Assembly: GCA_003693705.1 (NCBI GenBank)
Contig: RBZT01000790.1
Location: 1-64,000 of the forward strand
Origin: Polymyxa betae A26-41
Lineage: Eukaryota > Protista > Endomyxa: Phytomyxea
Direction of reading: 5' to 3'
Length of the DNA: 64,000 bases
Positions 42,327 through 43,994 of the stretch are shown here, piece after piece (the first letter of the stretch is position 1; every line of letters begins with the position of its first letter). Under the pieces are notes generated by a model, which was not told the origin of the DNA, searched no databases, and was given only the letters and a program-made list of their open reading frames with translations. Position numbers and translations under genes: made by a program.

Positions 42327-43490
42327 TTAGAACCCTCCTACAAGAGCATTGCTCTTATAAGCCTGATCTACTTCTCTGTCGTCAAATGTCTTTAACGTCG
42401 ACGAAGCTGCTTTCCTAGCAGCGCTGTTGGCAACACCAGCCTCGGCTAGTCGATCATATCCGTTCACGAGACGCGACGCTTGCTGTCCGTTGCTGACCTC
42501 ACCACCGGGAGCAGCATCAGCGATGCCGACCTCCTGCTGCTGCGATCCGCTTGCCCAATGGTTATCAAGCGCCCTCATGTTGGCAGAGTTGATGACCCGG
42601 CTCTCCTCCGAATCGCCATGTTGCAGGGCGCCTTGCTTCGACTCCAGATGTTGTGCAGCTACTGAACGTCCAGCAGAAGCCCCGGCAGGCCCAACCAGAA
42701 TAGCATCGTTAGCAGCAACTTTCGCTGTTGTTTGCTTGTTATAGGCTTCGTTCAAGTTGTTGGCATTACGATCAGCAAGAACAGACTTCTTGGCTGAGTT
42801 GATGCCCCGTTCACGAGACTCTTCAAATTCGGCCGCCTCCGACCCACCGGTTCCCAGAGCTGCTCCAAAAGGGGAAAACCGCTCGCCTACCGATGCAAAC
42901 TTGGCGGCATCCTTTTTCGAAGCACCGCGATCAAACTGCTCCGAGATGAGAGAATCTTCTTCCAGATGCTGGTCGATGTGATCGGCGTCCGAGGTCGCCT
43001 GTTCACGTCCTTGTAAGAGATTATGGTAGGAAGACCCAGCTCCAGCTACAGGGCCGCCAATCAATGCATCAGATGCTACAGTTCCTTGAACGATTCCAGT
43101 GTCTAAAGCAGAACTGGTCTGGCGCCCATTCTGGTCGACGAGCCGCGAGTTCGAAGTAATCAAGGCTCCGCGATCAAAATCGGTGATCAGGGATTTCGAG
43201 TTGGAACCTGAAGATCCGGCTGCAGCGCCAAACGGACTTCCACCAGCGCCGATATTAACGGATTGGCTTGCCGCGCCAATCGCATTCGCCCGATCATAAG
43301 AGGCGACGTTCGAGTTCGAGTCAAACTGATCTGCATGGTCGTTGTTCTGGAGGTTAAAACCTTTGCGATATCGATCGAATTGGTTTTCTCGCATACTGCC
43401 TGCATTTCCAGGTATGAAGAGCAGAGGTTCGGATAGGATGGTTGGTGTAATAGCCAACAAGGAGAGCAGGGTGAAGACGTGTAGACTCAT
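42327..43490 (-). CDS. Secreted 387-aa Cys-free protein with strict 60-residue periodicity
   Basis: Signal peptide MSLHVFTLLSLLAITPTILS. Intronless. Prolines at 27, 86, 147, 207, 268, 328. Confidence 0.85.
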   Translation of the reverse strand: MSLHVFTLLSLLAITPTILSEPLLFIPGNAGSMRENQFDRYRKGFNLQNNDHADQFDSNSNVASYDRANAIGAASQSVNIGAGGSPFGAAAGSSGSNSKSLITDFDRGALITSNSRLVDQNGRQTSSALDTGIVQGTVASDALIGGPVAGAGSSYHNLLQGREQATSDADHIDQHLEEDSLISEQFDRGASKKDAAKFASVGERFSPFGAALGTGGSEAAEFEESRERGINSAKKSVLADRNANNLNEAYNKQTTAKVAANDAILVGPAGASAGRSVAAQHLESKQGALQHGDSEESRVINSANMRALDNHWASGSQQQEVGIADAAPGGEVSNGQQASRLVNGYDRLAEAGVANSAARKAASSTLKTFDDREVDQAYKSNALVGGF

Positions 43491-43994
43491 CTAGACAAAA
43501 TTGAGCTGATCTGAATATTAGCAAGATCGATTTGGACTGGAGCCGGTTGCAGAAGGATCCCTCTTCAAAATCACGGCGAATGCCATTCGCCACAAAGAGA
43601 GTTTATGGGTCATCCGCTTTCCCATGCTCCGATGGCCGAAAATCATTGAGGTCGTCTCAAACTGCTTTAATATTTATATGTAGCAATTACATCAACATGC
43701 ATTAGCCGAATGCTATTTTACAATAATATCAGAATTGTTATTAGACACTTTTTCGTACGGAACGACAAAATCACTAGCAAAGCCAGAAACCATCAGTGAA
43801 GTCATGAAACGACTGAACGGAATTGAAGTTATGTGTACCTAGCTGTAGGATTCACGTTGCAGGTAGACAATGACAAGCTGATGTTTATCATATAAGAGAA
43901 TTGTAGCAGTAAAATTGGAACGATTATCAGCCCCAATCATAACTTCGATCGTCTTCGCAGTTTCTTCGTTCTGACCGGCGACGTCACGGAAGCG

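Follow-up and report, generated by a model that had tools for sequence, protein, structure and literature searches.

The locus and its product

The window analysed in this work is the whole of a 64,000-nucleotide stretch of DNA from Polymyxa betae A26-41 (contig RBZT01000790.1, positions 1 to 64,000). Its minus strand carries, at 42327-43490, an intronless open reading frame (ORF) with an ATG start and 387 codons followed by a stop, whose product we regard as a candidate structural protein of resting spores. This product has an N-terminal signal sequence, is hydrophilic, its grand average of hydropathy (GRAVY) being -0.44, and has a high content of Ala, Ser, Gly, Asn and Asp, with A+S+G accounting for 37% of its residues. 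It contains 0 Cys, and its composition agrees with an earlier reading made from the DNA alone (hereafter called the sequence-only reading), which had described a Cys-free chain rich in A/S/G/N/D/Q. The features of the gene are listed below; the strands and turns are predictions drawn from an AlphaFold2 (AF2) model, from the lattice of paired strands and from the scans described further on.

42327-43490, minus strand: gene, 387 codons plus stop (ORF)
43431-43490, minus strand: signal peptide, about residues 1-20 (read by eye; relatives are listed in SignalP-based secretomes, PMC12503489)
43245-43409, minus strand: predicted strand s1, residues 28-82, with F/Y-R-K-G-F and YDRA motifs (AF2 strand 30-76; lattice)
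43287-43298, minus strand: YDRA, residues 65-68, first member of the putative six-strand Asp/Arg double ladder (lattice rows 66 and 67)
43221-43244, minus strand: predicted turn 1, residues 83-90, Gly-rich loop with P86, centre 86.5 (AF2; complementarity scan; indels)
43062-43220, minus strand: predicted strand s2, residues 91-143, with FDRG at 105-108 (AF2 strand 97-143; lattice)
43041-43061, minus strand: predicted turn 2, residues 144-150, tight turn IGGPVAG with P147, centre 147.0 (AF2; complementarity scan)
42882-43040, minus strand: predicted strand s3, residues 151-203, with FDRG at 186-189 (AF2 strand 152-198; lattice)
42858-42881, minus strand: predicted turn 3, residues 204-211, loop with P207, centre 207.5 (AF2; complementarity scan; indels)
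42699-42857, minus strand: predicted strand s4, residues 212-264, with RERG at 226-229 (AF2 strand 217-263; lattice)
42678-42698, minus strand: predicted turn 4, residues 265-271, tight turn LVGPAGA with P268, centre 268.5 (AF2; complementarity scan)
42519-42677, minus strand: predicted strand s5, residues 272-324, with LDNHW at 308-312 (AF2 strand 272-324; lattice)
42498-42518, minus strand: predicted turn 5, residues 325-331, with P328, centre 328.0 (AF2; complementarity scan)
42339-42497, minus strand: predicted strand s6, residues 332-384, with GYDR at 344-347 and FDD at 369-371, and with a free edge complementary to s1 (AF2 strand 332-384; lattice; edge scan)

The remaining members of the Asp/Arg ladder lie at residues 105-108, 186-189, 226-229, 308-311 and 344-347. 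Upstream of the ATG, an AT-rich region holds a TATAAATA-like element (43660-43720, minus strand, about 190 nt upstream).

Proline spacing and tandem repeats

The product has prolines at positions 16, 22, 27, 86, 147, 207, 268 and 328. The proline positions given in the sequence-only reading are exact: counted from P27, the gaps are 59, 61, 60, 61 and 60 residues, the chain ends at 387 and all the turn motifs that it quoted are present in the product. By simple counting, the chance that five prolines placed at random over 360 positions would leave every gap from P27 at 59-61 residues is 243/C(360,5), i.e. about 5e-9.

A longer period of about 121 residues had also been proposed, and it proved real. 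When the mature chain is compared with itself by BLOSUM autocorrelation, peaks appear at lags of 121 residues (z 4.5) and 243 residues (z 3.6), the 99th percentile of the maximum in shuffled sequences being 4.0. With hhalign, the unit 28-147 matches the unit 148-268 with an E-value of 1.5e-9; the third unit is more diverged, with an E-value of 0.0018 against the first unit and no match against the second. Given these autocorrelation peaks and unit-versus-unit profile matches, the protein as read from its sequence is made of three tandem units of ~121 residues, each comprising two halves of ~60 residues.

A small family of plasmodiophorid proteins

A HMMER scan of 1.84 billion representative proteins returned 13 relatives only, the full-length ones having 361-408 residues, and a second, word-indexed search using the alignment yielded 0 further members. 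Pfam searches with the query and all 15 aligned members gave nothing relevant, and a sequence-profile search of the PDB returned chance matches only (E-values of 0.16 or worse). The sequence-only reading was thus correct in assigning the protein to no known family. The query has the traits of its family, namely a signal peptide and six proline-free segments of ~55 residues with DRG-type ladder motifs. Members were found in Polymyxa, Plasmodiophora and Spongospora, and the family is apparently specific to plasmodiophorids.

The P. betae genome contains five paralogs, namely the query and copies on contigs C316, C805, C592 and C390. The C390 paralog (L005-L007, G000:C390:17262-18560, minus strand) is the most diverged and has three exons, which we left unjoined in the analysis and the first two of which are partially modelled in the P0015 entry; the other paralogs are intronless. 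For the three pairs of intronless paralogs that could be measured, dN/dS values are 0.12-0.18 and synonymous sites are nearly saturated, which indicates that the paralogs are old and constrained by purifying selection. The C805 paralog (L003, G000:C805:7895-9043, plus strand) is full length except for one in-frame TGA in the signal-peptide region, and it was used only downstream of that codon. It may be a pseudogene, or the TGA may reflect a sequencing error or an unrecognized start or intron. A short broken fragment similar to residues 278-352 of the query and containing a TGA (L008, G000:C316:56873-57094, minus strand) lies at 22 kb from the intact paralog on C316 and has the appearance of a partial copy in decay.

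The closest Spongospora relative, P0005, is 43% identical to the query over residues 10-385 (E-value 3.5e-69). In P. brassicae, the relatives are PBRA_007470/PBTT_06382 and a 408-residue protein named TRAPPC6B. P0010, which belongs to the same 90% identity cluster as PBRA_007470 and PBTT_06382, matches the query with an E-value of 2e-21. The supplement of a survey of plasmodiophorid secretomes (Mukhopadhyay et al. 2025, PMC12503489) lists the family as an anonymous 'Seq cluster 81' comprising PBTT_01547, PBTT_06382, A0A0H5RB81, A0A0H5QUY9, poly_jg3668.t1 and poly_jg4363.t1, with AF2 confidence scores (predicted local distance difference test, pLDDT) of 51-78, an IUPred3 'Disordered' flag on most members, and no name, fold description or function. 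From its sequence relationships the query belongs to this cluster, since P0010 and PBTT_06382 share a cluster and the calculated mass of P0005, 40.022 kDa, equals that listed for the fragment entry A0A0H5RB81. Searches of main texts in the literature for the P. brassicae and S. subterranea identifiers gave no match, and the identifiers are also missing from the supplements to the P. brassicae genome paper, to the in-planta study of Spongospora and to the transcriptome study of germination.

Several database entries related to the family call for comment. A 253-residue protein annotated as Beta vulgaris (BVRB_031050, partial), encoded on a 759-base contig, is 100% identical to residues 107-359 of the query (42411-43172) and is probably P. 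betae DNA within the sugar-beet assembly. Among the P. brassicae entries P0008 and P0016, the 625-residue SPQ94278.1 looks like a fused gene model of TRAPPC6B and a family member, and the name 'Trafficking protein particle complex subunit 6B' of the 408-residue XXQ31089.1 has probably been carried over wrongly. P0006, from a 1104-base ENA contig, has an N-terminus that matches FAD_binding_2 and 110 C-terminal residues that are 67% identical to the family, and it is probably a chimaera arising from assembly or gene calling. The Logan contig that encodes P0007 has an Illumina adapter at its end, directly past an AATAAA-like motif (L009:1279-1299). Lastly, P0008 at its C-terminus and P0012 after its signal peptide carry Gly/Tyr- and Pro/Tyr-rich extensions that are absent from the P. 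betae copy. By analogy, these extensions are reminiscent of tyrosine cross-linked structural proteins.

Sequence tests of the strand register

We analysed the register of the repeats in the sequences of 13 family members, at 21-65% identity, independently of AF2. Proline occurs in these sequences only at the equivalents of positions 27, 82-89, 147, 204-207, 268, 328-330 and 387, with one exception that lies inside an insertion. The sequence-only reading had noted that a next proline would be due at 387, where the query ends, and five relatives have one at the equivalent position. No single proline is invariant, however: P328 is replaced by Leu in the closest relatives, and P86 by Leu in P0002. 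The trait that the aligned sequences have kept is permission for proline at the turn and end positions only, rather than fixed individual prolines. Insertions and deletions are distributed in the same manner. Turn zones, which represent 13% of positions, contain 33 of the 44 indel events, and six more abut turn 2, whereas the inter-turn segments of ~55 residues are constant in length across the 13 members. Indels breaking the 60-residue register had been named beforehand as evidence that would count against it, and their confinement to the turns upholds it.

The family conservation profile is mirror-symmetric about the turns. Among all centres scanned, the three with the highest mirror correlation are 207.5, 147.0 and 87.5, and the correlation is also high at 267.5/268.5 and 328-329. 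Its mean over the five turns is 0.50, compared with 0.20 +/- 0.05 in permutations, and a scan of the phase peaks only at the true one. Cross-strand complementarity was also scored at each of the 560 possible hairpin centres, on the basis of opposite charges, hydrophobic pairs and aromatic-on-glycine pairs between facing residues. Exactly five outliers emerged, at 147.0, 86.5, 207.5, 328.0 and 268.5 (z 4.0-5.3), the next best centre having a z of 2.3. This score was picked after the motifs had been seen, and plain charge complementarity agrees with it, giving the identical top five centres. Removal of the DRG row leaves four of these centres in the first four ranks and the remaining one in a tie for fifth. 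In contrast, hydrophobic-hydrophobic pairing does not mark the hairpin centres. The mirror placement of motifs around the turns, noted for a few motifs in the sequence-only reading, is thus genuine and more general than described there.

In the predicted register, 40-58 cells pair opposite charges and 2-12 pair like charges, against mostly 9-33 (one 45) and 10-37, respectively, in shifted registers. The signal is sharp to one residue and drops to background when the centre is shifted by half a residue. The resulting lattice rows are consistent across all six strands. Row 66 reads D66 R107 D187 R228 D309 R347 and row 67 reads R67 D106 R188 E227 N310 D346, and in the flanking rows 65 and 68 aromatic residues alternate with glycine. 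Near the long loops, the rows of the family consensus read A G A G V G, I S I S I S and G G G G. At four successive positions, the residue matches its lateral neighbours on both sides, and glycines are conserved within the segments; these two features suit a sheet, not helical hairpins.

Predicted fold

With a 15-sequence alignment, AF2 predicted six strands of 47-53 residues, with a mean pLDDT of 78.6 and 191 residues at or above 90; the pLDDT exceeds 90 along the strands, and the five turns are the only places where it is low. The Gly/Ala/Ser-rich runs of the query are located at these turns. The six antiparallel strands put forward in the sequence-only reading are thus supported by the AF2 model, by the hairpin-centre scans, by the exclusion of proline and by the confinement of indels to turns. 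Together they support a model of six antiparallel strands of ~55 residues, in a predicted sheet roughly 18 nm long that turns at the prolines. This model draws on one AF2 job with a shallow alignment, and on statistics for 13 related, non-independent sequences.

The two faces of the predicted sheet are equally polar, with mean Kyte-Doolittle hydropathies of -0.67 and -0.85. Together with the failure of hydrophobic pairing to mark the hairpin centres, this bears out the earlier suggestion that the chain has no hydrophobic core, and it supports a model in which the sheet would not insert into membranes.

Several observations weigh against such a sheet. Three of the five alignment-based AF2 models have lower scores, of 69.9, 51.2 and 32.2. 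Monomer modelling had been suggested as a check in the sequence-only reading, and its outcome depends on the alignment: without one, the AF2 model is poor and mostly helical, at a pLDDT of 47.8, and the six strands at 78.6 are obtained with it. The ESM Atlas model has a pLDDT of 0.36. Most family members are classified as 'disordered' by IUPred3, and one reaches a pLDDT of only 51 (PMC12503489). Classic beta-formers are scarce in the composition, and the query has no period-2 hydrophobic pattern, as seen from the lack of a 180-degree hydrophobic moment; no 100-degree moment was found in it either. No charge-swap covariation was seen among the relatives, only conserved complementarity. Finally, the Spongospora homologs are readily extracted by sodium dodecyl sulfate (SDS) or urea, with near-complete coverage (PMC7397026). 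This ease of extraction argues against a covalently cross-linked or highly resistant polymer.

Edge strands and possible assembly

The two edge strands of the predicted sheet are complementary to each other. At zero offset, s1 and s6 score 3.46 for charge and 7.46 for the full score, level with the real hairpins, and no such peak was found for s1-s4 and s3-s6, the non-adjacent pairs related by the repeat. We considered a closed six-stranded barrel and rejected it, as the best s1-s6 register has zero shear. A zero-shear closed barrel of six strands is geometrically infeasible. The complementary edges therefore suggest that s6 pairs with s1 of the next molecule, which would leave the Asp/Arg ladder unbroken and allow the sheet to grow head to tail. 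Polymerization into a sheet or wall had been raised in the sequence-only reading; the match between s1 and s6 gives indirect support to this idea, and polymerization itself we infer from it.

Abundance of Spongospora homologs in resting spores

Proteomic data on Ludox-purified resting spores of S. subterranea (PMC7397026) link the family to a developmental stage. A0A0H5RB81 was detected with 39 peptides, 89.4% coverage, 495 tandem mass spectra and an intensity of 3.9e10. Its cluster-mate A0A0H5QUY9 was detected with 47 peptides, 88% coverage, 1034 spectra, an intensity of 1.4e11 and log2 label-free quantification (LFQ) values of 33-35. The other proteins examined in the same table have log2 LFQ values of 21-29 and intensities of 1e8-3e9. 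The two homologs were also detected by the weak SP3 method, which gave about 200 proteins in total (PMC7397026). Through their homology with the query, these very abundant Spongospora proteins support the view that dormant spores contain the family as a bulk component.

The protein would therefore most likely serve the durable spore or sporosorus as a structural component of its matrix or wall. Moxham and Buczacki are said to have found in 1983 that the spore wall of P. brassicae is about one third protein, besides chitin. Of the two locations imagined in the sequence-only reading, the spore or cyst wall has gained a link to spores through the Spongospora proteomics, the wall itself being our deduction; the Rohr/Stachel penetration apparatus has gained no support, as the sole stage evidence comes from resting spores.

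Interpretation and alternative explanations

Our favoured explanation, to which we assign a probability of roughly 55%, is that the gene codes for a secreted, plasmodiophorid-specific, six-stranded beta-meander that assembles head to tail and serves as a bulk structural protein of resting spores. The mature chain would be a threefold tandem of a beta-hairpin unit of ~121 residues, and, at least in the assembled or concentrated state, its six strands of ~55 residues would run antiparallel in a meander about 18 nm long. Its register would be held not by a hydrophobic core but by cross-strand salt bridges, i.e. the double Asp/Arg ladder running over the six strands, and by aromatic-on-glycine pairs. 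The zero-offset complementarity of s1 and s6 would let molecules add head to tail with the ladder continued, giving an open-ended sheet, and the family, as a bulk component of resting spores, would make up a structural matrix or wall of the spore or sporosorus. More tentatively, and with clearly less confidence, we envisage an undescribed fold and biomaterial, in which zero-shear meanders of ~55-residue strands would join head to tail into cross-beta ribbons or sheets ~18 nm wide that form a protein layer of the resting-spore wall, perhaps laminated with chitin.

The main rival, which we consider rather unlikely, is a hydrophilic, intrinsically disordered protectant against drying, similar to late embryogenesis abundant (LEA) proteins, that would be stored in dormant spores with no defined sheet in solution. 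The IUPred3 flag on most members, the family GRAVY values of -0.44 to -0.55 with a composition rich in A/S/G/N/D/Q, the low confidence of single-sequence models, the absence of amphipathic periodicity of any kind and the abundance of easily extracted homologs in dormant spores would all suit such a protein. In contrast, disorder would hardly account for five hairpin centres that are sharp to one residue, and the ladder rows, the exclusion of proline and the restriction of indels to turns point to a defined fold. The glycines conserved within the segments oppose an LEA-type helix, no Pfam LEA family matches and a signal peptide is present. This rival and the six-stranded reading would partly merge if the protein were disordered in dilute solution and adopted the sheet on drying. 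That the segments are long alpha-helices packed in antiparallel hairpins or bundles, the AF2 beta model being an artefact of a shallow alignment, seems improbable to us. The single-sequence AF2 model is indeed mostly helical, the chain contains many Ala, Leu, Glu, Gln, Lys and Arg residues, and the exclusion of proline suits helices equally well. However, the helical model has a pLDDT of 47.8 compared with 78.6 with the alignment, glycines are conserved within segments and make up entire rows across the lattice, and helices could not have four consecutive residues that pair with both lateral neighbours. In addition, the register signal falls to background after a half-residue shift of the centre, and a 100-degree hydrophobic moment is missing.

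Two further alternatives concern function rather than fold. The signal peptide and the listing of family members as cluster 81 in an effector-oriented secretome study (PMC12503489) could suggest a secreted, host-targeted effector. This is unlikely, given the bulk abundance of the Spongospora homologs in dormant purified spores and the purifying selection on a family that is kept across three genera with different hosts; the absence of the Spongospora identifiers from the in-planta supplement tables examined is weak evidence in the same direction. Least probable of all is a role as a component of the Rohr/Stachel penetration apparatus or of another zoospore-cyst extrusome. In its favour there are only the predicted shape, which resembles a rod or ribbon, and the confinement of the family to plasmodiophorids; the stage evidence concerns resting spores rather than encysted zoospores, and no data tie the family to the Stachel.

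Significance

It is through resting spores that clubroot, powdery scab and infestations with rhizomania vectors persist for many years in soil. The wall of these spores is known to be protein-rich, and its proteins are uncharacterized as far as we found in the literature. This family provides a concrete candidate: it has been conserved in each of the three sequenced genera, a Spongospora member is very abundant in purified spores, and the proposed structural design is testable. If the six-stranded model is correct, its ~55-residue strands would be among the longest regular strands known, and a wall layer built of such sheets would help explain the survival of spores in soil for years. It would also be unusual for a large sheet with self-complementary edges to owe its specification almost entirely to ladders of charges and aromatic-glycine pairs, and such a sheet would be relevant to cross-beta assembly and to designed materials. 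More generally, a protein flagged as 'disordered' in a structure-guided secretome survey can bear a precise two-dimensional register.

Comparison with known folds and systems

The best Foldseek matches of the model in the PDB are the pore-state hairpins of C9, perforin and pleurotolysin, with template modelling (TM) scores of at most 0.2 and low probabilities. A wide VIA-align search returned pieces of barrel walls, with Z-scores of 8-9.7 over 100-170 residues, which is about the stated background of the tool. Overall, the matches from Foldseek (PDB and BFVD), VIA-align and the ESM Atlas were limited to generic long hairpins or barrel walls (TM scores <=0.44, Z-scores <=9.7). Within these libraries, the modelled architecture thus has no counterpart, and the query belongs to a new, unnamed family whose predicted architecture is unmatched among them.

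The MACPF/CDC pore hairpins are likewise very long and are joined edge to edge between subunits, but the query has no MACPF domain according to Pfam and lacks the amphipathic period-2 pattern of membrane strands, so that it does not belong with them. The walls of bacterial outer-membrane beta-barrels are up-and-down antiparallel meanders, as predicted for the query, with TM scores of at most 0.37 in the atlas. The query differs from these barrels by its zero-shear edge pairing, its polar faces, its eukaryotic secretory signal and its much longer strands, and we do not consider it a member of this group. Neither does it fit curli and beta-solenoid amyloids, which stack repeats of ~19-23 residues, whereas the query has a 121-residue period and mirror symmetry about five centres. 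LEA proteins and hydrophilins are hydrophilic, predicted to be disordered and abundant in dormant stages, similar to the query family. In contrast with them, the query has a signal peptide and a mirror-symmetric register, and it has neither a Pfam LEA match nor a 100-degree peak, which sets it apart.

Silk fibroins, silkmoth chorion and lacewing egg-stalk silk are extracellular, Ala/Gly/Ser-rich assemblies of antiparallel sheets, built of 4-8-residue strands and short repeats. The nearest feature cluster of the query in the ESM Atlas is 'fibroin heavy chain-like', at only 0.76. The query differs from silk and chorion by its 60/121-residue repeat and its charged ladders, and has no homology with them; the likeness is compositional only and does not make it a member. 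Borrelia OspA and the staphylococcal SasG G5-E rods are elongated polar sheets without a hydrophobic core that rely on cross-strand side-chain pairs. They were not among the Foldseek and VIA-align matches and have no sequence relation to the query, and they are built of three short strands per unit, whereas the query is predicted to have six strands of ~55 residues.

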